Assembly: GCF_001194135.2 (NCBI RefSeq)
Contig: NC_069006.1
Location: 6,997,261 to 7,061,260, forward strand
Source: Octopus bimaculoides
Taxonomy: Eukaryota
Length of the DNA stretch: 64,000 nt
Reading direction: 5' to 3'
The position numbers and the translations under genes were made by a program. Below, in pieces: positions 1-42,109 of the stretch (positions within the stretch are counted from its first letter, which is position 1; each line of letters begins with the position of its first letter). The notes under the pieces are model-generated. The model saw only the letters and a list, made by a program, of their open reading frames with translations, was not told the origin of the DNA and did not search any database.

Positions 1-656
1 GGAGTTTGCTTCCCAACCATGTGGTCTCGGGTTCAGTTCCTCTGAATGATCATTTTGGCACTTGTCCTCTGCTATAGCCCTTAGTTAGCCAAAGCTTTCA
101 TAATGGATTTGGTAGACTGAAACTGAAAGCAGCCCATTTTGTATGTATGCATGTGTGTGTATGTTTCCTCATCTTAATATGGCATGGTTGTCGTAAATGA
201 GTTTCACTGTCATACAAGCAGGGTTGTTCATTTCCAATTTTCCATGAAAATGTCCATCCGTGGGGAAATATCAACTGGCTTGGAAACAGGTGATGGGTGG
301 CAATAGGAAGCACATCCAGCCCTAAAAATCTGCCTTGATTTCTGATCCATACAAGCATAGAAAAATGAATGTAAAATGATGATGACAGTGCAATGCTAAC
401 ATTTTGTTAGTCAATTGTTGTGGAAGGATTCTGACCACCCCTCAAGTGACTAAAAGGTGGACTGACTCATTGTTATAAAACAAAAAACTCTGAGCGATTA
501 GCAGTTCAGTGTGAGCCTTTCATACAGAGCATTGAGTCTCGTGTAATAGTAATGTGTTTTGTATATACAATCTTTCCTTTTGCTTCATTATATTCTGTAT
601 CCAATACAAGGATACAAACCCAACAAATACCAGAACAAAAAATACTTCTCGGTTCC

Positions 657-903
657 TTAAAATACAATTTCCTGGGCAGATTCCATGTCTACTTTAGGTT
701 TTGAACCTTTGGCTGCAAGACTTAAATCTCTTGCCCACAGATATTCACAAATTGTAGTCAACACTAATTCAATAGAAGGCACTGATCCCCTTTCCTGAGT
801 GGTGTCTGTTAAATTCTGAATCTTCAAAACTGGGATTTCCCAATTTTGTTCAAAATTCTCAATATCTCTTTGAGTGATTTCGCTCTCATCGAATTTATCA
901 AAT
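657..903 (-). CDS. CPLANE2: CPLANE2 terminal coding exon 5 (K-FDKFDESEITQRDIENFEQNWEIPVLKIQ...ICEYLWARDLSLAAKGSKPKVDMESAQEIVF*)
   Basis: Matches human KFDQYMHTDVPERDLTAFRQAWELPLL...LAEQLWHQD. Joined CDS is 106+153+125+137+247=768 nt, giving 255 aa. Confidence 0.9.
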
Positions 904-1898
904 CTGGAAGGTGTCAAGGAATACATAAAATGTCAAGTTTTTAATATCACCAACAGTTAATGATGTATGAATGAAGCTTATTCTAGCTGTCATCAGCTGA
1001 GATAATCTCTCTTACTCTCTCTGCACAAGAATGTCAGTTTGTCACAATATAATGGAAAACCTCTTAGCCCCTTGTGGAGTATAGGGCCGATTTCCATGGC
1101 GTATGTGTTCTCTGCTAGCTGGATGGAACACCAGTCCATCGCAGCTTTTTTTTTTTTTACTCAAGAAAGAGTGAGAGAAAGCTGGGGCGAAAGAGTACAA
1201 CAGGGGTTGCCACCACCCCCTGCCGGAGCCTCGTGGAGCTTTTAGGTGTTTTTGCTCAATAAACACACATAACGCCCAGTCTCGGAATCGAAACTGCGAT
1301 CCTCCGACCGCGAGTCCGCTGCCCTAACCACTGGGCCATTGCGCCTCCACTGTCACAATATAAACTCGTAATATAATTGTCAATTACACAAGCCTCTATT
1401 CCTTAACCCTTTTAATATTAAGATTTCTGTCAAATCTAAAGCTGATTTATTTACATTGTTTTTAATTAATCATGTATCATTTCGTAGCTTTGAGTTTTCA
1501 ATGATGTGATTGTATATATTTTTAGAATGACATTGTAGGGTAGGTGTGAGAAGCTGGATCTTGCTGGCTTGAACATAAAACAGGTAGAATAATATTTGGA
1601 TTAGATATGGCCAGTTTAAATCAATATGCTGTTGATGTAACCCACTTCCCCTCCCCTCAAAAACTGGTGGCCCTGTGCCATAATTTGAAGCCAATATTAT
1701 TAAAGGCTGTGAACTGGCAGGTCAAACTTAATAAATAGCGGCTTCCTCATTGGCTCAAGCTATGTGCTACACTTTACCATGGTACCTATTTATCAGTAAA
1801 AGGAGTGAACATTTGACAAGTGTTTTTACTGAAGAGCCAGTCACTTGCCTCTCTATTCATGTCACTCACTAATGATACTAATTCATTGAAAAGGATAT
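904..1898 (-). other. Putative U12 (minor spliceosome) intron with AT-AG termini
   Basis: 5' end ATATCCTTTTC (1898 downward). Branch-site TTCCTTGAC at 921-913. 3' end ccttccag at 904. This junction restores GTKFD in frame. Confidence 0.8.
1140..1350 (-). mobile_element. SINE family E (tRNA head GGCGCAATGGCCCAGTGGTTAGGGC), in CPLANE2 intron 4
   Basis: Longer copy at about 51745-52097 and 3' part at about 47020-47170. Confidence 0.8.
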
Positions 1899-2035
1899 TT
1901 GGTTCCAACAGCAATGCGGCAGATGTCATCACCAAGTTCTGTGAATCGACAGATCATCTGAGAGAGGTCATCAAAACTACTTTTGTCAACGAGTGAGAAG
2001 AGGAACATCACACAGTCGATGCCATCCTTGCAGGC
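1899..2035 (-). CDS. CPLANE2: CPLANE2 coding exon 4 (ACKDGIDCVMFLFSLVDKSSFDDLSQMICRFTELGDDICRIAVGT-K)
   Basis: Matches human ACMENTDAFLFLFSFTDRASFEDL...VIGSK. tacag acceptor; followed by ATATCCTT (U12 5' splice site). Confidence 0.92.
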
Positions 2036-3398
2036 CTGTAACAGATTAGCCACAAAAAGTGAAGCACTAAAATTATCTATAATAATAATAATAATGATAG
2101 TAATGAAATTCTGTTTGTCATAGCATGTGTTTGAGTGTTATGCCTTAACTTTGAAATGAATATCAAAAACATCTTTCAAATCTTTTAACATTATAGGTGC
2201 AGCAGTGGCTGTGTGGTAAGTCACTTGCTTAACAGCCACATAGGTGCAGGAATAAGAAGCTTGCTTACCAATCACATGGTTCCAGGTTCAGTCCCACTGC
2301 GTGGCACCTTCGGCAAGTATCTTCTACTAAAGCCTCAGGTTGACCAAAGCCTTTTGAGAAGATTTGGTAAACGGAAACTGAAAGAAGCCCATCATTTACA
2401 TATGCATTTATATGTGTGTCTGTGTTTGTCACCCCACCATCACTTGACAACCGATGCTGGTGTGTTTACTAAGTCCTAGGATTGATTTGTTCAACTAAAG
2501 GTGGTGCTCCAGCATGGCCACAGTCAAATGACTGAAACAAGTAAAAGAATAACAAACCTAGTTTGGGTGTTCTGCTTTAAACAACTTTACAGAACAAAAC
2601 TGAAGACACAATTGAAACATTTATTAAAGGTTGTAAGGTGACGAGCGTGCCAGTTCCCATCAAACTGTCCAGCTCGGAAAACAGATGTATGATGATGATA
2701 TTTAAACACAAACAGAAGACGGCAACATAGCAGCCATTAAGGAGTGCAATAAAATACCTTGTGGGGCTAATAAAAATAAACTACCTTCACCCAACCAACC
2801 ACAATCCTGGTTCCTCAGTCTCCATTCACTTCTACTCACTTCATACCTTGACACCTCATCACCCCTATTTTTATTTTTTCCCAGCTCCAGCCCCAGTCAC
2901 TCTCGCCCTCTCTTAAAATGTGAGTAGTCATGTGACCGTAACCCCTCAGTACCAAGAAATCTGATATGTTCTGGGCCCCTTCTTTCTCATTTTAACCCCT
3001 CGTTTCCAGTAGAAAGCCTCCTCCCTCTCTACTGTAGCCCCACTCAGCTGAAGGCGATCTCAGTGTTGCAAGCTGCATGGTTACCTCATTAGTGTTGGTG
3101 ACACATAAAAAGCCCCCACTGCACACTATAAAATGGTTGGTTTTAGGAAGGGCATGCCAAAGGAGACATTGGAAGCTGATGTAGTCCTTGGACCTGATGA
3201 ATCCTTTCAAACTGTCTAACCCCTACCAGCATGGATCACAGACATTAAATGATGATGAAGACTGGAAAAATTGTTGGTGTGTCGGACAAGCTGCCTTGCA
3301 GTGTTTGTTTTATCTCTTTTTACGCCCCACAGCCCTTCCCACCCCTCTGACTAAGCAGTAAAAGAAATAGACTAAAAAATTTTTAAAGTAGAACTGAC

Positions 3399-3523
3399 CG
3401 GAAGGATGTGGTCAAACTTCTTTGCTGCCATTTCTCCACTTTCCCAGAAATTTAGATTAAATAACACAACTTTGTTTAATTGGCGTATACGGGCGGGCCA
3501 GTAATTCCGGAACACTTCAATGC
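3399..3523 (-). CDS. CPLANE2: CPLANE2 coding exon 3 (G-IEVFRNYWPARIRQLNKVVLFNLNFWESGEMAAKKFDHILP)
   Basis: Not in the ORF track. Manual translation matches human FWPAKL...FEFWDCGESALKKFDHMLP. cag acceptor, gtcagt donor, phases consistent. Confidence 0.92.
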
Positions 3524-3761
3524 CTGTTTAATAATAATAATAATAATAATGATAATGCTGATAAAGATGATGATGATGACAACATAAGGAACTTTAACAG
3601 AGACAGACATTTTCAGTCTTAGCTACATTGTATCTGAACTCTTTAGATTACGATTGGAATGTAATCAGTAAAATGTAATGCTTATTAAAATAATAATAAC
3701 AATAATAAACAAGTGTAAATAAATTCTTTATGGCATCACAAATGAATGTAATGATTTTTAC

Positions 3762-3914
3762 CTGTTGTTTCGTAGTGGTTCTCTGGAATAGGATGTCCTG
3801 TAAGATTAGCTGCAGTAGCCGTTTTTCCAACTCCAGTTTTACCAACCAACAATATTTTATATTCAACTTCCTTGACAGAAACTGTCTTTGGCAGATTTGG
3901 CTGTTCCAGTAAAC
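3762..3914 (-). CDS. CPLANE2: CPLANE2 coding exon 2, P-loop GKTGVGKT
   Basis: GLLEQPNLPKTVSVKEVEYKILLVGKTGVGKTATAANLTGHPIPENHYETT matches recalled CPLANE2 GLLERP...YKIFVSGKSGVGKT...HHETTG. AG acceptor at 3916-3915, GT donor at 3761. Confidence 0.93.
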
Positions 3915-4903
3915 CTTTGTAAGAGACAATAGACAAAAACATATTCCACAGAGAATAATCCAATATTTTGGGGATTAATCATTTCATGACCATATTTCTG
4001 ATGAGATACATTTATTAATCATCATCATCATCATTTATCGTTTGTGTTCCATACTGGCATGGGTTGGATGGTTTAACAGGATCCAATGGATCTAAGGACT
4101 ACATTGTACTCTAGTGTCAGTTTTGGTAAGGATTCTATGGCTAGATGCCCTTCCTAATGTCAACCACTTTACAGCGTGGACTGGGTAGGTTTTTTTTTCC
4201 ATCCCACTGGCACTGCTGAGGTCACCATACAGCTCACAAGGTTTCAAAACCCAAGAAGCGGGGGAGACAGTAGCTTTATACTAAGACAGTGGTTTTCAGC
4301 TGGGGTCCACACAAACAAAATAATAAATTGGGGATCCATTGTAGCATTTTAAGGGTCCTTGAAAGGTTTTAATCTAAGTGTATCTTTTGCAAGAAACCAG
4401 TTTTTTTTATCTCATTTTATATAGTTCAGCCTACACGAGTGAGTAAATAACAAAATAGGAATCTTGAAAGAAATATCTTTAGAATTAGTTTTTAAACATT
4501 GAATGGTTATAGGGGTCCACCAGAATAAAATTGTAATCAGAGGAGTCCATAGGTAAAAGATGGTTGAGAGCCAGTGTGCTAAGAAATGAGTGAAGTGGGT
4601 GGAGCAGAGCAGGTTCTTGTAGAGGAGCTAAATGGCTTCTCGCATTTGGCACAGAGAGAGAGAGAGAGAATGAATCCTCTCTTTACAGCTAATTCTGATT
4701 CATTCTCATTGTATATGTGTTTTAATTAATTCTGAAAGGATATTAAAAGCTGTTACAACCAAAATTCTTCAATTAAAAATCTGATATAATCCGCAAAAAA
4801 CCAACACACCGGATCCCCTAAAAGATATCAAACCAAAGCCCCTAAGAGCCTGTGTATGAAACCCCCAAAAGGTGATGCACCCATCCCCTAAAAGGCTACT
4901 TAC

Positions 4904-5009
4904 CAAAGACCTTCCGAGACCCATCAGCATGTTGTAGTGAGAATAATATTTCCAAACCAATCTTTGATTGGTACCATTTGAAATCAAGTAAAGACCCAGT
5001 CTTCAACAT
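4904..5009 (-). CDS. CPLANE2: CPLANE2/RSG1-like small GTPase, coding exon 1 (MLKTGSLLDFKWYQSKIGLEILFSLQHADGSRKVF-G)
   Basis: Manual translation from ATG at 5009 to donor G|GTAAGT at 4903. Resembles the recalled human CPLANE2 N-terminus (PGSVVVPNWHESAEGKEYL...RRVFG). Phase 1 matches the next exon. An acceptor (ttttctattacag) just upstream implies a non-coding first exon. Confidence 0.85.
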
Positions 5010-7551
5010 CTTCATTTATTAACAGAACTGTAATAGAAAAAGATGATTGGTTATTAATGAGAATAAAATAATTAAAATACATTTTCTAATTACAATGGAG
5101 GATGCTCGTTAGGAGAGATAGGAAAGAAACTGGGGTTGGATCATCGCTGAAAAGGTTAGAAATGACACAGAGGTTCAAATCTTCTTAGATGCTAGATTTA
5201 GTCCATTGTCCAGTTTAACACCATCGCCTGGTCTTTGAGCGTCTTTAGAGGAATCCATTCAGGTCAGCCTGGGAGTACAGAACAACAACAACCAAGCTAC
5301 ATATTTTATCAACTTTTGAGGGGTGAAAGATAAAAATTAATTTGGGAGAAATTTAAACTCTGAACATGGACATGTATCATCATCCTCATTTTATGTCCAT
5401 GTTGACAAAGACTAAGATGATTCAACAGGATCCAATTGATCAGAAGACCATGTCTCACTCACATCTCAGCTTTGACTATTTCTACAGCTGAATGCCTTTC
5501 CTAACACTAGCCACTGTACAATATAATGGATGAATTTTCTTCATGGCATCAACACTACAGAGGTTACCTAGCCCCCAGCAACACTAGAGTCCTCACACCT
5601 CTGCATTGTCTCTACTTGATACACCAACCGTTTATGGCATATTGGCAGCTATTTTTGTGAACATCAGCACTAATGAAGCCACATATATATCATGCAGATT
5701 AAAACGTGTCAGTAAGATGTGTGAGGGAAAGTATAAACTGATTAAATCTAAGTTTTTATGTGAATGATAATTGATCTAAGAGGGTGGAGTGGCATGAAAG
5801 GAAAAACAGCTCATCAGAATTTCTATGCAAAGGTTAACATAACATATTCACTTAATCAAAACTTCAGTTACATGATGGCCAAGGAAGTTTTTTTTTTTTT
5901 TTTTTTTTTNNNNNNNNNNCTGAGTTCCTTTTGAATGTTGGGACTCATGAAGGCAAAGTGGTTGAGTTCCTTTCAAGTGTTGGACTTCACGGAGACAATG
6001 GCCGAGACCTTTGGCATTATGTTGTGCTTGAGAAGAAGACCCATCAAGTCGAGCAAAATCGAAGTCATGGCAGATACCAGCATCACATAAATGGCACCTG
6101 TGACAATGGCATGTAAAAGCACCCATTACACTCACAAAGTGGTTGGTATTAGGCAGAGTATCCAGCTGTAGAAACCCATGCCAAATCAGACTGGGGTCTG
6201 GTGTAGCCTTCCAGCTTACCAGCCCTGGTCAAGCCGTCCAACCCATGCCAGCATGGACAACAGACGTTAAATGATGATGATGATGTTACAGCCATGTTGT
6301 TTGTCATACAGAATATTTGGGATAGCAATTAAGAATTATTTGTTGTCATGTTCTGGTTATTGTTAAATTTCTGCGATTTTTCCTTTTCTTTTCTAATTAG
6401 TTCTTGCGTAACACCACAAACATGAACAATGGTAACGCACAGGAAAATAATTCTTCAACAAAAAAAGGAAAGAATACAAAAGAAAAAACAACAACTAAAA
6501 TACAAGTTATAAATCTTAATTAAACCTGCCAAATAGCCCTTATGACAAACAAGCTGATTCAAGCAAAACGTAAACACTTCTGCAGGTGTCAAACTAACAC
6601 CAGCTACAATGTGAGAGAGAAAGTGAAAGTAGTACGTTATAGTCAAAAGATCACCCAACGATGGCACTATGTGGTCGCTCAATCTGCTAGAAATAGCAAC
6701 CAAATCTCACCTTACCGCCTTAAATATGGAAAGGACACGTTGCATAATAATGTGGTCCTAAAAGTAGCTCTAAGACGACGTGGTCATGGTTGATATGACT
6801 TTGATCTCAAATGTGCTCAATGAGGACTGACGCCCACTGAACCCCGCCACTAGAGATTTACGAAACTAAATTTAGATAAAAAATTATGTCGAACTATGTC
6901 AGTCAGCCATTGTTTAGTAATCAGAAAATGACTGGGAAATTAAAACGATTGTAAGAAAAACGAAAACAATATTGTAAGAAAATATATATACATATATATA
7001 ATTACAGCATTACATGAGCATAACAAGAAATTTAAAATGTCTATTTTTTTAAAGATCAGAACAGTGAACGAATAACTGGAAAACATAAGATGTAGAATTT
7101 AAAGATTCCTCACAGAAAAAGCACCTTCGGTAACTATGACACCGGTTGATAGAACAGTGGTAGTTATCTGCTCTTGCGAAAACACTCGATAGGTGTCAGT
7201 TTAACTTAGTGAACTGAATAAAATAAAATAAAATAAAAACTGGAAACTGAAACAGGAAACAAATTTCGTTTCAGTGAGAGAAACTCTCATTGCATGAAAT
7301 CTTCAAAGAGAAGCACAAAATCAATTTTCCTGATGTTTTAGTTCCAAAGAGTTTCCAGATTACCGAATCTTCCGAACAAGGAATGGGCTACTTTGGCTAA
7401 TACATTCTAAATTAAGCAAATATTAAATTTACTTACATAATTAAACGAAATACTCGTACCTGTACATTAGTGTAGATAATAAGAGGTTCCGGACTAATGG
7501 TGTCCAGAAAGACCGTGTTGCACCTGCACACGCACACACACATATATGAGT

Positions 7552-24339: not shown

Positions 24340-26332
24340 TTATATTCGCATATAAGCTATTTTCTCGTCAGGATGGTGCTGCTTAATGTGAGGTTCAACT
24401 TCAAAACTATCCAAAGGAACATTGTCGGGGCAATAAGGACATTTGTAGATCTGAGAATGTCTGAAGCTGTGATGGGTTTTCAATGCTGCCCGATATGTGG
24501 TCTTGAAGTTGCATTTGTCACACTTGTAGATCTCCTTGCTGTATCGATCTTCAGACGTGTGTACAGCCTTGCTCAACGAGTGGGCAGTAGGAAACTCCGA
24601 AGTCTGTATAGGGGGGCCAATGGGAACAGGGCTGGGGTATGCATTTGGTGAAGATGAAAGATAGGAGCTCAGCTGAGAGGATGATGGACTCAAGTTAAAC
24701 ACTTTGAATGCGTCTGGAGGTATGTCATCAGGGTCTGAGGTACCCGTCGAGGATAAGTCCAAAGGAAGTACCCCCTGTGCTGCCTGCAGGGAGACGGGCA
24801 CCACCTGGTCGTTATGAAGAGAGGCAGTATCAGTTGTCAAGTACATCTCTTGTTCTTTTTCTTTTTTAATCACTTTGATGCCAAAAGTTGGAGGTGGGGT
24901 GAGGTCTGAGGATGCATGGTCTGCTGCTGAACGCGCTGCTAACTCCGACAAGTGCTGGCTGGCTGTCCGAGACGGACTACTTATTGGCCGTTTCAATCCC
25001 TTTAAGCCCAACGATACGGATTTAGAAATGGTAATGGGCTCAGAAACGCTCGTTTCTGAATCCTCTTCTACAACTGTATCCATTGGGCCGTCTTCTTCTA
25101 CACTTTCACAGTCCATATCTAAAGTTCCGTCCCCAGAGGGGTCTGTGCTGCTGTTGTTCTCTGACAGAGGTAGTAGTTTCGGTGTGCGTTCTGGATGATC
25201 GATAACAATAGGAGGGTTGCCCTGGTTCTCCTGGTGTGCAGCATTAGCAACTATCATCATTGGTTGGACAGTACCTGAAGGAGTTGTCGATGACGATGAC
25301 GAAGACGCAATTGCTCGGGCTTGTAACATGTTCCGCAGTAAAATAGTCTGAGAGCGAGGCGGTCGACCCCGACTCCGGCCTCGAGCGCTCAACGGCCCTA
25401 ATGATGATGTCGACACAGAAGTCGGTGTCTTCAGGTCGGAATCTTTCAAAATAACCACGTCGTCGTCGTCTTTCCGAGCTATTTTGGGTTCAGGCGGCTT
25501 AGGTGGACTAGGAGCAGGAGATGGAGGTAGGACTGGCTCGACCATAAGGCCACCAGATGAGGTGTTGCGGTTAGGCTTGCCATCACAGATAAATGCAAAC
25601 ACCACTTCACTACTGACGTCTCTGTCGTGGCAGTTGGCTATGTGTTCGCGGGCTGGTTTAGAGGTACTGGAATTAAATTCAGTGCAGTACGGACAGTGGT
25701 AGGACAATTTTTTATCGTGCACACGGTTGGAATGCAAGAAAAGAGAGATTCCATCAGGATACTCTTGGCTACACACTCTACATTTATAATGGGACAATTT
25801 GCCGACAAGCTTCTCTTTGTAGCGGGTCTGTTGATTCTTTTCAATGTTAGCTATGTACTTGGTGATGTAGACTGGGTCAAGGAAGAATGAAAGAGGCACA
25901 CCTCCATCACATTCGGGATGAGCGATACCAATATGTTTATAGATGTCGGCCTCCTTCTCCCCCTTGAATGTACAGTAGGGACAGGTGTACATGCAGAAAG
26001 CAGAATGAGAATTGATAATGTGGTCCTGCATCTGACTGAGGAATTTTGCTTCACAACCACATTTCTTGCACATGTAAATGGAACGGCCAATAAGAGGATC
26101 GTCGTCACCGGGGTACTTGCACTTGCGGTTCGAACTGGAGCTGGCATATTTTAAAGACATTGTTTTGGCATTCAACAAAACGGGAACAGCAAAACCTTCA
26201 GGAGGTATAATACAGTTATTGTTTGTACCGGTTCCTGGACGCCGAGTTGGACCAGAAATGCGGCCGCTATGAAGACTTACAACATTCACTATTTTCAGGC
26301 CCATATCTGTCCCAGAACTGTTCGCTGGTCCA
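24340..26332 (-). CDS. Large C2H2 zinc-finger protein, terminal exon (6 C2H2 fingers, AT-hook, PLDLS)
   Basis: 654-aa ORF extended to acceptor tcttgcag at 26333. Fingers CKKC, CPYC, CRVC, CPYC, CDKC, CPYC, each with H..H. The join with 31095-33544 totals 4443 nt (1480 aa) if no exon is hidden in the intronic N-gaps. Confidence 0.88.
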
Positions 26333-27202
26333 CTGCAAGAGAAAAATCAGACTGTTTATTCCTTTGATTAAGAAAAGTAATTAATTTAATAGCATCAACT
26401 GTCGTCTATTTTCAAATAACATTTCAAAGAACCAGAAATATCAAAGTCGGAGCGTAAATAAAAATAGTGATTTTAGTTTAAATGAATTTATATATTCTTA
26501 AATCACAAATTAATAAAATTGAGATGCTGTGTCACAAAGCATATATCATCATCGTTTAACGTCCACTTTCCATGCTAGCATGGGTTGGACAATTTGACTG
26601 AGGACTGGTGGACCAGGAGGCGACACCAGGCTCCAATCTGATTTGGCAGAGTTTCTACAGCTGGATGACCTTCAAAATAACCATAGTTATAAAAAAAAGG
26701 ATTATACATTCATTGCTATATAACATAGAATATGGTGTCTATACACACACAGGTTTCTTATTAGCACATCTAGAATACCACTTGGCTTAAACTCTTAAGA
26801 GTTACCAATTCCACAGACTGGTGGCTAATGTATAGTCTAAGCTCAGGATGGAGGTGTATCTGCCTATAAAGGATCGTTCTGCTAAAATGAAACACTTATT
26901 ATCATAAATCAACTCCCAACTCTCACAACATGTTTATTCGAATGTTTCACTTTAAACAACCTTCACTACAGAACAAAATCAAGGACACAAGGGAAATCTT
27001 TCACATTAAGGTGACAGAGACTTAAAAATTGAGAAACATTCACAAAACGTGTGGAATTTCCATGAATTCCTGCTCGGATATGTTATGGGGGAGGGGGTAA
27101 TTAATTCGTTTAAGGAAGCAGAGATAGAACTCAGTTCACTGAGGGAAAATACTACACATACATACATGTCAATATATGCAATTTCTCCCAAACTAGTATT
27201 AA

Positions 27203-31094: not shown

Positions 31095-33544
31095 CTTGTT
31101 TTTCCTTGCATATACATACCACCCCTGCCGTATGCAGTGTTGCGGTAACGATTGAAGCGATTGCTTGCAGGATCCACAGGAGTCTGCGGTTCTTCGCTGT
31201 CTGTGAAATCAGGTAGCTTCCGGCATTTTATAGTTTTTCCCGGGTGAACAGTATTATAATGACTAAGAAGATTGGCCTTTGACGTTAAGACAAGTCCATC
31301 GCACAGTGTACATGTGTAGTGCACTGCTCCTGGATGTTGACCAGTAACATGCTGCTGTATTATCTCGCGCTGATCAGTGGAAAATTTGCAGTATGTACAT
31401 TGGAACCGATCAGGCACCTCGACAACATCCTTTTGGTTGCCTTGCTTCCCACCTGGGCTGTTTCCATTGACAACAACTGAGATAAAGACAGGGTTAGATT
31501 TTGAATTCTTTTCATCGGTTGAACTAGCATCACCGGAAGCTGATTTAGTCGTGTTGCTGCCGCCGCCGCCGCCACCACCACCGCTGCTGGCGGTGCTGGT
31601 GCTTGTCACGTTTTGTTTGCTATCGTCGTCATCAGAAACGTTTTCCCGAATCTCAAGATAATGCTCCTTCTCATTAATTTCAGTGGTTTTCTCAATTTTC
31701 TGTGGAAGATATTTGTGACTGGACTGATGGTGGATGGCAGCTGTGCCAAAAGTGGTGAAATCAGTGCTGCAATGACCACATCGGAACACTTTCTGGGTGA
31801 TATGTGCATAAATATGTTCTGTCATCAAGTCTTTTTCCTGACATGAATATTGGCAATGAACACAGCTGTAACTTGGGGGGGTGGCTCCAGTCTTCTTTTC
31901 GGAATTAATTAGGAGTTTGGAAACGGTCACAGTTCGATTTTCATTGCCTTCTGTCCACTGTTTCGAATAAGATGTCCGTTTGAAGCCTTTGTTGGTGTTA
32001 TTCGATTCATTCTGACTGGAGATAAAGCTGAGAAAACTGCCTTCGTAGCTGTCCTGCTCAACACTAGGCGGATTGTTTGCTTGAGAATTGTAGTCAATAA
32101 CCTTAATGCGTTTGACAAGAGGAAAATCTTTAGAGAGCTCGGAAACATCAATGTCGAGTTCTTTAAAGAAATCCGTTAAACCAACTTTACACGGTCGGCA
32201 ACGCTTGATCATTTCCCTGACTAAGCCTCGTTTCCTTGACACACCTTGCCTGTAGATAGTTGCCGAAGTTCCACCGTCCTGACAGTAGATGTTAGCTGAG
32301 GGGCTGCCATCTGGACGATAAATCGTAGCAGACGTGTTACCATCCACATGATAGATTTTGGCCGAAGTACTGCCGTCTGGACGGTAAATAGTTCGTGAAG
32401 GAGAAGAACCATCCATACTTGAATCTGGGGTGGAATCATCAGAATGCTCTTTGTCAAGTGAGAAACTCCCAAAACCTTTCTTGCCACTTAAAGACAAGTC
32501 TCTCTGTTTGATATACGATGGTGTCGGACGCCATTTCGAGCCACGAATGAAACCTTTCCTAAGCAACATGCGCCGCAGTGCACTAATCTCTTTAGCAAAC
32601 TTTATCTTTTCCTCTTCTTTCTCTCGGTCTTCGTCATTCATATCATCCAAGTTGATAGGAAGTCCATTCTCATCCAGATCAACTGCAGGAATGCTGCTCT
32701 CATCATAAATACCATATTCTCGATGCATGACATTCTTATCAAGAGTCTCACTGGTTTTCTTCAGCTTCATGCCTTCTCCCAGAAGCCCTATCTTCTCAAA
32801 AAACGATTGTTTGCTCTCAGAATCTGATTGGACATCAGGTGACGTACTGCGGTGGCCCATAGCAGATTCATTGGCTTCAGTTTCATTATTGTCCGACTGT
32901 GTGGTTGCATTATCGTCTAAAAGAGCAGATGGACTAATGCCATCTTTTTGGCGAGATAAATTTGAATTTGGTTTGGAATCCAGCTGAGATTTTACTTCGT
33001 CTGTTGATGCCATAGACCTTGAACCATCATCCCCCTCATCAGCCAAGAGGTTTTTACTTGAAGATTCACTTTTACAAGTGGAAACTTCTTCTTTCAAATC
33101 GTCTGAAGTCATGTCTTCCTCATTCGCGCTGTCATCAACTTCTTGTTTCACAGTCACAACATTTTCACTCTTCTTCTTAACACCTGTTTTAGCATCAACA
33201 TTGCTCTTTTCGTCAACATCACTTTTTTCCTCAACATCACTTTTTTCCTCAACATCACTTTTTTCCTCAACATCACCTTTTTCTTCGACATCGCTCTTTT
33301 CTTCGACATCGCTCTTTTCCTCGACATCGCTCTTTTCCTCGACATCGCTCTTTTCATCATCAACATCGTTCTTTATTACGTCAGCTTCACTCTTTACATC
33401 AGCATCACTCTTTTCATCGCCGGTGCCCTTTTCTTCAACATCACTCTTTTCTTCAACATCACTCTTTTCTTCAATGTCGCTCTTTTCTAGAGAAGAGCTG
33501 TCTCCCTCGGAGACATCTGTTGGCTGAGGAATCGAGCTGGACAT
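31095..33544 (-). CDS. Large C2H2 zinc-finger protein, first identified coding exon (KSDVEE repeat, 11-aa repeat, 4 C2H2 fingers)
   Basis: Long ORF. Acceptor tttcctatcag at 33582, ATG at 33544 in caccATG context. Fingers CVHC..H..H, CGHC, CTYC, CTLC. Donor AAG|GTATGT at 31094 is in phase with the downstream exon. An upstream coding exon cannot be excluded. Confidence 0.85.
32243..32392 (-). repeat. Coding 33-bp repeat, 4.5 x (T/K/N)IYxxDGxxSA
   Basis: TIYRPDGSTSA KIYHVDGNTSA TIYRPDGSPSA NIYCQDGGTSA TIYRQG. Confidence 0.9.
33193..33487 (-). repeat. Coding 18-bp minisatellite (EKSDVE)n, about 16 units
   Basis: Read directly in the ORF and in the DNA. Confidence 0.95.
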
Positions 33545-39735: not shown

Positions 39736-42109
39736 ATAAGAGGCTGGCTCTGAATGTCTTCTTCTTTCTCATCAGACAAAAGAAGGACATTTGTGGCAGA
39801 TACAGGTGTCACGCAAACTGGCACCCGTGCCGGTGGTATGTAAACGCACCCAGGTGTCATGCAAACAGCACTCATGCCGGTGGCACATAAAATCACCGAT
39901 TACACTCTCAGAGGGGTTGGCATTAAGAAGGGCATCCAACCATAGAAAATCATGCCAAATCAGACTGGAGTCTGGGGCAGCCTTTCAGTGTACCAGCCCA
40001 GTCAAACCGTCCAACCCATGCTTTGTTTTTAACAGCAGACTGCATCTCCCACACTAAACTCACTCAACTGTGAACTGACATGGGACTGGCCACTCTGATC
40101 CTCTTGCCTCTGTCACCTAATATTTTAAATTGTGCATTTGTGGGTGTACATATAGAAAAAGATAGGAGTTATCATCGTCCACTTTAACTTCCAGGTTTCA
40201 TGCTGATTATGTTGGACATTTCCGACATGATCCAGCAAGCCAGAACAGCTGTAGTGATCTCCTATGTCAGGTTTGGTATGGCTGGACACCTTTCCTAAAA
40301 CCCAACCATTTAAGGGTTGGTGTTTAGAACTATTAAATGATTTCTGAAATAGACACAAGATCATAAATCTGAGGCCAGGGTATGGTCAATTACATTGACC
40401 TGTCTTTGTATGTATCAATAAGGAAGCCACTAGCCCAATGGTTCTAACCGCAGCTCCGAGGACCTCACCCAGCCCTCAAGCATCCTTCCAGTGTCCCCTA
40501 ATGGTCTTCCCTCTACAGATGTAAGTTTTTCTTCAATTGACTTGTATTTTACATTTTTTTGGGTGCAGCCCCCTAAAGAAATCCAGGTTTGGGACTCAGC
40601 CTGGGTATTAAAAAGGTTAAGAATCACTGCTCTATGCAACTGATTGAACTGTTAAAAATACTAGCTAAATCTCCCCATTTTGTATTTAAAAGTGAAGGTA
40701 ACACCACACAACGTAAACCAAGATATTTTAAAAGGATGGAATGATCACAACTGCAATGCATCCCACATAAACTTGCACAATAAGGGTTAACCTCAGGATA
40801 AACAATATCAGGTACATACTTTATTAACCCCGGAAAAATGAAGGGCAACGTTGTCCTCAGTATTATCTGAACCCATAATGTAAAGAGCCATAACCTGATT
40901 TGATCTGGTAGTTCATATTATCAGTATTTTAACATCTACTTTTCCATGCTTCCATGGGTTGGATGGAAATTGAGGTGGATTTTGTATGGTCAGATGCCCT
41001 ACTCATCACCAATCCTCACTTGTTTGCAGGTGAGGTAATATATCCCCCCATGACCAAACATGTTTTCACAGAAGATTGGAAAGGATACTAGTTGCGTAAC
41101 AGTGACTCTCACTTGCAAGTATCATGGGAAGACAAGGAAAGGAAATGACAACACACCCATGCACATATACATACATATATATATATAAAGAAAGAGAGAG
41201 CTTCTTTCAGTTTCCATCTACCAAATCCACTTGCAAGAGTTTGGTCAGTCTGGTACTATAGTAGAGGACACTGGCCCAAGGTGCCACACAGTGGGACTGA
41301 ACTTGGAACCATGTGGTTGGGAAGCAAGCTTCTTACCACATATGTGTGTAGCAATGGCTTTTTTTCCATTGTTAGAAAACAAATCCCATTCCAGTTGCCT
41401 AGATGCTTTAGCGAACACAGTAAAAAGGCCATTATTAGCCACAAACTACAAAAGTTTTATGAGTTGACAAAACATGAAGGATATCAACCACCGGAACACC
41501 TTGTCTAGTAAACAATTAAAACATTCTATGTTTTCCAAGAACATGTGGTTGTTGCTAGCACAGTACACAACGAGCCTAACACACACACACACACAGTGGA
41601 ACAATGAAGTTAGTAAATCTGGAGGCAAGTTTGCAGAGGAAGAAAGATGACTTTGCTGATATTTGTCATGGTAGGTGGCCTTGTGCCAATGTCAGAAATC
41701 AATATTTGTCATGCTACTGTAGTCTCTCACCTAAAGCACTGTATATCAAAGTTAACTTAATCAGGTCATACACAATACAATGCTCTCTCGCTCTCTCTCT
41801 AGCAATATATATTTGCTGATAACTTCATCAGCTGATGTTGAAAAATCAAAGAAGGCCACATATATATANNNNNNNNNNNNNNNNNNNNNNNNNNNNNNNN
41901 NNNNNNNNNNNNNNNNNNNNNNNNNNNNNNNNNNNNNNNNNNNNNNNNNNNNNNNNNNNNNNNNNNNNNNNNNNNNNNNNNNNNNNNNNNNNNNNNNNNN
42001 NNNNNNNNNNNNNNNNNNNNNNNNNNNNNNNNNNNNNNNNNNNNNNNNNNNNNNNNNNNNNNNNNNNNNNNNNNNNNNNNNNNNNNNNNNNNNNNNNNNN
42101 NNNNNNNNN

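Follow-up and report, generated by a model that had tools for sequence, protein, structure and literature searches.

A U12-type intron of CPLANE2 with AT-AG termini in Octopus, apparently derived from a GT-AG minor intron

In this study, we report that intron 4 of the five-exon gene CPLANE2, encoded on the minus strand of a 64,000-nucleotide stretch of Octopus bimaculoides DNA (the window; chromosome record CM046626.1), carries the full set of U12-type signals, namely the 5' splice site ATATCCTTTT, the branch-point sequence TTCCTTGAC and a terminal AG, together with AT-AG termini. Read in the register of its donor motif, the intron is assigned to the non-canonical AT-AG (A-type, AT-AN) subtype of U12 introns. 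The sequence signals, the homology of intron position and phase, the polarity of the change at the first intron base and its fixation in three Octopus species are documented below, and from them we infer that intron 4 is removed by the minor spliceosome. In the reading that we favour, with a probability of about 0.88, an ancient GT-AG U12 intron underwent a G-to-A change at +1 that became fixed in the Octopus lineage, and the intron is still removed by the minor spliceosome.

The exons of CPLANE2 were located with bivalve CPLANE2 proteins as tblastn queries and by inspection of the sequence (Table 1). The spliced product of 257 amino acids is identical to NCBI XP_052832967.1 and its isoforms, annotated as "ciliogenesis and planar polarity effector 2", and also to the older O. 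bimaculoides entry XP_014784868.1. It contains a Ras-superfamily GTPase domain (Pfam Ras, E = 2.6e-11; Roc, E = 3.1e-8). A profile search recovered orthologues across Metazoa, and the family-named best matches listed were almost all annotated as CPLANE2/RSG1; the wider orthologue set was taken from this search, the word-indexed protein search with CPLANE2 having returned two bivalve matches only. The exact RefSeq match and the Ras-family domain bear out the gene name given in an earlier reading of the bare sequence (the original prediction), and the three exons found upstream agree with its numbering of the exon before the intron as exon 4. Introns 1-3 are of the ordinary GT-AG kind, their 3' ends rich in pyrimidines.

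Table 1. Coordinates of CPLANE2 and of features in intron 4 in the window, with the signals of the orthologous introns.
Feature	Position	Strand	Remarks
CPLANE2 exon 1, coding part	5015-4904	-	ATG at 5015; ends ...RKVFG/gtaagt
CPLANE2 exon 2	3914-3762	-	P-loop GKTGVGKT; GT-AG U2-like introns on both sides; tblastn and gene model
CPLANE2 exon 3	3523-3399	-	Following intron 3 is GT-AG, U2-like; tblastn and gene model
CPLANE2 exon 4	2035-1899	-	ACKDGIDCVMFLFSLVDKSS...CRIAVGTK, with the first two bases of the Lys176 codon; tblastn and gene model
CPLANE2 intron 4	1898..904	-	Assigned to U12 type, AT-AG termini; 995 nt; phase 2; splits the Lys176 codon (AA/A) in the G4 box TKFD
Intron 4 5' splice site ATATCCTTTT	1898-1889	-	Match to the U12 AT-class consensus; A at +1 is window position 1898
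U2-consensus donor GTGAGT, intron +30	1869-1864	-	Conserved in three Octopus species; putative cryptic/unproductive competitor
tRNA-derived SINE, poly(A) tail	1146-1348	-	Inside intron 4, sense orientation; not part of the splicing signals
Intron 4 branch-point sequence TTCCTTGAC	921-913	-	9-mer; branch A at 914, the 11th nt from the 3' end
Intron 4 3' terminal AG	905-904	-	Context CCAG/A
CPLANE2 exon 5, coding part	903-657	-	Third base of Lys176, then FDKFDESEITQRD...EIVF; stop 659-657
Orthologous intron, three Octopus species			Donor ATATCCTTT; 3' end AG; branch site TTCCTTGAC, branch A at -11
Orthologous intron, Mya, Liolophura, Haliotis, Lingula, Callorhinchus, Cricetulus			Donor GTATCCTTT; 3' end AG; TCCTTAAC-like branch site, branch A at -11 to -16
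Orthologous intron, Branchiostoma			Donor GTATCCTA; 3' end AG; branch site GCCCTTAAC, branch A at -15
Orthologous intron, Argonauta			Donor GTATCCTTT; 3' end AG; branch site CTCCTTAAC about 60 nt upstream, behind a T-rich stretch

Exon 4 terminates in ...GGA ACC AA and intron 4 opens directly with ATATCCTTTT, leaving the junction without a GT. The 3' end of the intron is TTCCTTGACACCTTCCAG, that is, the branch site TTCCTTGAC followed by ACCTTCCAG. When 1899 is joined to 903, the lysine codon AA/A is restored and the peptide GTKFDKFDE is encoded. From +1, the donor agrees with the extended U12 consensus [A/G]TATCCTT, and near the 3' splice site the intron contains the branch motif TCCTTRAY with the branch A as the 11th nucleotide from the end, the optimum distance between a U12 branch point and the 3' splice site being 11-13 nt (PMC3584512). 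The pyrimidine fraction is 0.73 over -25 to -4, a stretch made up mostly of the branch motif and the short spacer CCTTCC, and the 3' end has no long pyrimidine tract of the kind seen in introns 1-3. Every sequence statement in the original prediction was reproduced here, from the end of exon 4, the donor and the branch site to the spacing of the branch A, the terminal AG and the restored TKFD.

All donor and acceptor pairs that reproduce the CPLANE2 protein were listed with a spliced-alignment script, and three registers of intron 4 were found to give the same mRNA: AT-AG, TA-GA (shift +1) and AT-AT (shift +2). Junction reads alone therefore cannot separate the three, and AT-AG was preferred as the register that leaves the ATATCC motif in place and in which the orthologous introns read GT-AG. 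Two AC dinucleotides near the 3' end were also considered. The in-frame AC at 914-913, named in the original prediction, was rejected as a 3' splice site, being the branch site's own GAC. The AC at 912-911 was rejected as an AT-AC style 3' end: it falls 2 nt beyond the branch A, would break the reading frame and has no counterpart in O. sinensis and O. vulgaris, which read GACTCC here.

Both U12 motifs occur across the window at about the rate expected ([AG]TATCCTT, 7 against 5.4 expected; TCCTTRAY, 15 against 11.7 expected), and their significance lies in their placement at homology-defined exon ends and in their conservation across species. The chance of a donor motif falling exactly at a homology-defined exon end is about 4e-5 and that of a branch motif falling 9-16 nt before a homology-defined acceptor about 7e-4, giving a joint chance of about 3e-8 before conservation in ten other genomes is counted. 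One further candidate minor intron on the minus strand of the window was rejected. It pairs ATATCCTTC at 41484 with TTCCTTGACCCAGTCTAC ending at 25867 as an apparent 15.6-kb AT-AC intron that is motif-perfect, has its branch A at -11 and has flanks open on both sides in phase 0. Its "branch site" is coding sequence, situated inside the continuous exon PLSFFLDPVYITKY of a neighbouring zinc-finger gene onto which the homologue P0124 was mapped. Pairs of U12 motifs on their own can thus mislead, since such pairs arise by chance at the scale of the window.

The neighbouring gene has two very large coding exons on the minus strand (24343-26343 and 31100-33274), which belong to a protein of about 1370 amino acids with C2H2-like zinc fingers and long Ser/Pro-rich low-complexity regions. 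Its identity to the representative P0124 is 71-75% by tblastn and 63% by phmmer with the terminal exon. The terminal exon gave no Pfam match, and a word-indexed protein search with the 508-aa exon was empty, probably owing to low complexity.

The A at +1 of intron 4 is common to three Octopus assemblies (GCA_001194135.2, GCA_006345805.1 and GCA_951406725.2), and the base at 1898, for which the original prediction had asked for confirmation, is genuine in that O. sinensis and O. vulgaris carry the same A. The loci of these two species have the same donor ATATCCTTTT and the 3' end TTCCTTGAC[A/T]CCTTCCAG. Overall identity between the O. bimaculoides intron and those of O. sinensis and O. vulgaris is only about 80%, whereas 27 of 28 signal positions agree in all three species; with introns so diverged, agreement at 27 or more of the 28 has a probability of about 0.013. 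Set against an intron divergence of about 20%, this identity indicates that the signals are still under selection, or in use.

Annotation of the locus provides a further line of evidence. The RefSeq models of O. bimaculoides (from two annotation runs) and of O. sinensis use the junction that gives TKFD, and annotations that do not use the 1899/903 junction break exactly there: the O. vulgaris protein CAI9741450 runs on into the intron and then meets a stop (GTKYPFS followed by the stop), and VGTKFDKFDE is missing from the original O. bimaculoides model A0A0L8G1S7, which is consistent with a forced GT-AG pair. The NCBI pipeline is not known to take non-consensus splice sites without transcript support and, if this held here, the RefSeq TKFD models would amount to indirect transcript evidence for the junction. 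Use of the 1899/903 junction in the mRNA is indirectly supported by the RefSeq models and by protein conservation.

Intron 4 also contains a SINE (Table 1), whose diagnostic cores are absent from the introns of O. sinensis, O. vulgaris and Argonauta, indicating a recent, O. bimaculoides-specific insertion. Similar SINE-like sequence is present near 1-110 and 2197-2400. A scan of the whole window at the Rfam gathering threshold and an ARAGORN run on 1-6000 both returned nothing, and the SINE was not called by either. A 558-aa DNAJC11-like model on the plus strand ends at window position 2219 (TAA at 2217-2219). Its end appears to consist of a 23-nt terminal coding piece (2197-2219) that follows a ttatag acceptor and lies in SINE-like sequence in CPLANE2 intron 3; the last intron of the DNAJC11-like isoform would in that case span CPLANE2 exons 4-5 and the minor intron in antisense orientation. 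That isoform may be spurious or minor, arising from repeat exonisation. Antisense coding constraint from the DNAJC11-like model was considered and rejected, there being no plus-strand coding ORF over the splice sites. A further intronic sequence, GGUUAAGGAAUA (1397-1419), precedes the branch site by about 480 nt on the pre-mRNA, shows complementarity to the branch-site region (901-923) and resembles the branch-binding sequence of U12 snRNA. The pairing of 1397-1419 with 901-923 (23 nt, 74%) is probably a coincidence, as 13 other, similar chance-level pairs occur in the same 1.7 kb.

For comparison of the orthologous introns, the genomic loci of eight non-Octopus species were used (Argonauta, Mya, Liolophura, Haliotis, Lingula, Branchiostoma, Callorhinchus and Cricetulus), which include a clam, a chiton, an abalone, a brachiopod, amphioxus, elephant shark and hamster. 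A U12-like intron is present at the same position and in the same phase in ten other genomes, where it interrupts the codon for the lysine in the [TS]K[FYC]D G4 box. In 17 aligned orthologues this lysine never varies, and the [TS]K[FYCL]D box is conserved. In eight out of eight non-Octopus species the orthologous intron begins with the donor GTATCC and ends in AG; the donor is GTATCCTT(T), or GTATCCTA in amphioxus. A TCCTTAAC-like branch site lies 11-16 nt from the intron end in all the non-Octopus species but Argonauta. Human CPLANE2 (NM_030907.3) has been catalogued as containing a U12 GT-AG intron with the donor CCAAGTATCCTTTGG and the branch site CTCCTTGAC (PMC8280824, supplement). As the eight sampled orthologues and the catalogued human intron are all GT-AG, parsimony points to a GT-AG ancestor. 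On this distribution, intron 4 would be an ancient bilaterian minor intron of ancestral GT-AG subtype, and a single G-to-A transition at +1, later than the separation from the Argonauta lineage, would account for the AT-AG state in Octopus. The alignment across molluscs and vertebrates that had been proposed as a check thus yields an intron of the same position and phase that is GT-AG outside Octopus.

Octopus and Argonauta both belong to Octopoda, Incirrata, and the polarity is based on this single octopod outgroup together with more distant taxa, squid, cuttlefish, nautilus and other octopodids lying outside the sample. The 3' region of the Argonauta intron is atypical, which limits its value as an outgroup at the branch site but not at the +1 base. 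In Argonauta hians (L004, 3972-5236), the U12 donor is perfect, and the only good branch motif is CTCCTTAAC, placed within the last ~70 nt of the intron, about 60 nt upstream of the annotated AG. The T-rich stretch between this motif and the AG resembles an insertion or a nascent polypyrimidine tract. The Argonauta intron could be drifting towards U2-type 3' recognition, could have a long-distance branch site or could carry a mis-annotated acceptor.

The proposed mechanism would begin with an ancestral bilaterian U12 intron of CPLANE2 placed within the codon for the invariant G4-box lysine. In the Octopus lineage, after the split from Argonauta, the G-to-A transition at +1 would have been fixed, giving the AT-AG termini. 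The donor core TATCCTTT at +2 to +9 has stayed intact and would pair with U11 and then with U6atac, while the branch site TTCCTTGAC and the 11-nt spacing of its branch A, likewise intact, would pair with U12. The minor spliceosome handles both A and G at +1. With the pairing parts preserved and either base accepted at +1, intron 4 would still be removed by the minor spliceosome, and the mRNA would encode ...GTKFD.... The +1 change itself is most simply taken as neutral or mildly deleterious rather than adaptive. Dietrich, Fuller and Padgett in 2005 reportedly found that a 5' A splices to any 3' residue and a 5' G only poorly to a 3' C, in which case AT-AG would be a passable single-step neighbour of GT-AG.

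Published work bears on how efficiently such an intron might be spliced. Non-canonical termini support U12 splicing experimentally, often less efficiently, and AT-AG combinations are described as disfavoured and as probably spliced poorly (PMC3584512). Among the minor introns of human cells, those of the A-type (AT-AN), including AT-AG, show higher basal retention and depend on CENATAC, and A-type donors lose to GT-AG donors in direct competition (PMC8280824). In Octopus, intron 4 would most likely be a functional minor intron, possibly a somewhat less efficient one.

These data raise the alternative that the G-to-A change crippled U12 splicing, so that a cryptic major-spliceosome site or retention dominates and the TKFD mRNA is minor or a product of annotation. 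Besides the poor splicing described for AT-AG forms (PMC3584512) and the stronger retention of A-type introns in human cells (PMC8280824), the U2-consensus donor GTGAGT, 29 nt inside the intron and conserved in three Octopus species, speaks in its favour. Use of this donor would add 29 nt carrying an in-frame TGA and hence a premature stop; with either its use or retention, the TGA would follow right after Lys176 and about 80 C-terminal residues would be lost. These residues are well conserved, both within Octopus and across phyla, which argues that a productive TKFD mRNA is required, and the almost perfect conservation of the U12 donor and branch site against an intron divergence of about 20% argues that they are still in use. 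We consider dominant mis-splicing of this kind very unlikely. A related proposal, which we regard as unlikely, is that the weakening by AT-AG and the conserved GTGAGT together act as a lineage-specific throttle on CPLANE2; in a rarer variant of it, A-to-I editing restores GU. If true, an efficient G-type minor intron would have been turned into a weak A-type intron and stably fixed in Octopus, and the throttle would act on ciliogenesis and planar-polarity output, responding to minor-spliceosome or CENATAC-like activity. The original prediction had supposed that the intron may be a rate-limiting step for a ciliogenesis effector, a regulatory role that is conjectural.

The original prediction had suggested that the intron may lie on a path from AT-AC to GT-AG, as a transitional form whose 3' C had been replaced by G while its 5' A was still to be replaced. 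AT-AG has indeed been proposed as a viable intermediate between the two subtypes (PMC1557818; PMC3584512), and subtype switches are usually discussed in the direction AT-AC to GT-AG (PMC2831892). However, the sampled orthologues are all GT-AG, in protostomes and deuterostomes alike and including the closest outgroup Argonauta, so that many independent conversions from AT-AC to GT-AG would be needed in place of one G-to-A change. With all eight non-Octopus introns and the human intron GT-AG and no AT-AC ancestor seen among them, this part of the original prediction was not upheld, and an AT-AC ancestry is highly improbable. Cephalopods edit RNA extensively, inosine is read as G, and ADAR requires a double-stranded substrate. 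It could accordingly be supposed that the A at +1 is edited to inosine by ADAR, giving an IU-AG intron that is functionally GU-AG and spliced in an editing-dependent manner, and the circumstantial point in favour is that the organism is a coleoid cephalopod. Against this, shuffled sequence folds just as well as the 276-nt region surrounding the donor (z = +0.94; in 168 of 200 shuffles the fold was equally good or better), and a search for inverted repeats found none spanning 1898, only short chance-level pairs. Editing would also be superfluous where the minor spliceosome accepts A at +1, and we hold it to be exceedingly improbable. An assembly or sequencing error at 1898, with an ordinary GT-AG U12 intron behind it, has the prior plausibility that attaches to any single base; it is refuted by the presence of the same A in the assemblies of three species and retains next to no probability.

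The closest known system is the orthologous U12 intron of human CPLANE2, also named RSG1 (chr1:16232298-16232509, NM_030907.3), which splits the same codon (..GSK/FD..). The human and octopus introns have the same donor core TATCCTTT and the same CCAG 3' end, and their branch sites are near-identical (CTCCTTGAC in human, TTCCTTGAC in octopus), whereas the main human isoform is GT-AG and the octopus intron AT-AG. Human CPLANE2 has tandem donors, GTATCCTTTGG followed by ATATCCTTGG; the second (ATATCCTT), located 11 nt downstream, is used in the predicted isoform XM_011542126.2, which is classed as U12 AT-AG and is out of frame (+11 nt) (PMC8280824 supplement). The octopus intron, in contrast, has no tandem donor copy, and its AT donor is primary and in-frame. 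A strict tandem donor copy was not seen in the other ten species, in which only look-alikes with one mismatch occur, GTATCATT at +21 in Octopus and ATATCTTC at +16 in Lingula. The Octopus look-alike (1871-1878, minus strand) is conserved in three Octopus species, and its use would include an in-frame TGA.

Natural mammalian AT-AG U12 introns, such as those of NUP210, USP21, INPP5B and RAPGEFL1, are of the same subtype as the octopus intron and have a U12 donor and branch site, and in XPO4, ACTR10 and SCN10A the intron is AT-AG in human and GT-AG in mouse, a one-nucleotide difference of the same kind (PMC1557818). The mammalian cases span a short evolutionary distance, whereas the octopus change is polarised from GT-AG to AT-AG by many outgroups and is shared by three species. 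The CENATAC-dependent A-type (AT-AN) introns, a class that explicitly includes AT-AG (PMC8280824), may offer the best model for the octopus change. U2-type AT-AC introns, found for example in sodium-channel genes, share with the octopus intron a first dinucleotide other than GT, but they have a U2-like donor with G at +5 and lack a U12 branch site. With its C at +5 and its complete U12 branch site, the octopus intron does not belong to the U2-type AT-AC class (comparison: PMC2831892).

As the original prediction stated, AT-AG is a minority subtype of U12 introns (Sheth 2006, PMC1557818; Turunen 2013, PMC3584512) and ciliary genes carry minor introns, an enrichment already published (Khatri 2023). 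Among non-canonical U12 subtypes AT-AG is the most frequent, with 11 cases in human, 8 in mouse and 1 in Arabidopsis, and Sheth et al. 2006 already proposed it as a viable switching intermediate (PMC1557818). A pan-eukaryotic intronIC survey that included Octopus sinensis found 83% of human minor introns conserved in octopus and reported AT-AG among the conserved non-canonical minor introns of animals, typically with C before AG, a feature with which the CCAG end of intron 4 agrees. CPLANE2 is contained in cilium-related gene-ontology gene lists (PMC8280824 supplement), and in the main-text literature nothing was found that connects RSG1/CPLANE2 with minor introns, the gene occurring in supplementary tables only (PMC8280824). 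The novelty is smaller than the original prediction implied, the human intron having been catalogued before and the idea of an AT-AG intermediate dating from 2006. What appears to be new is the AT-AG state of this known minor intron in Octopus and its derivation from GT-AG, as shown by outgroups. Intron 4 is a tidy example of a documented AT-AG kind and not a new mechanism.

In practical terms, gene callers that insist on canonical splice sites fail at this intron, and cephalopod CPLANE2 annotations need checking. For the biology of minor introns, CPLANE2 intron 4 in Octopus offers a cleanly polarised change from GT-AG to AT-AG that has been kept through at least one speciation series, which supports AT-AG as a tolerated state and shows that the step between the two forms can go in the less-discussed direction.
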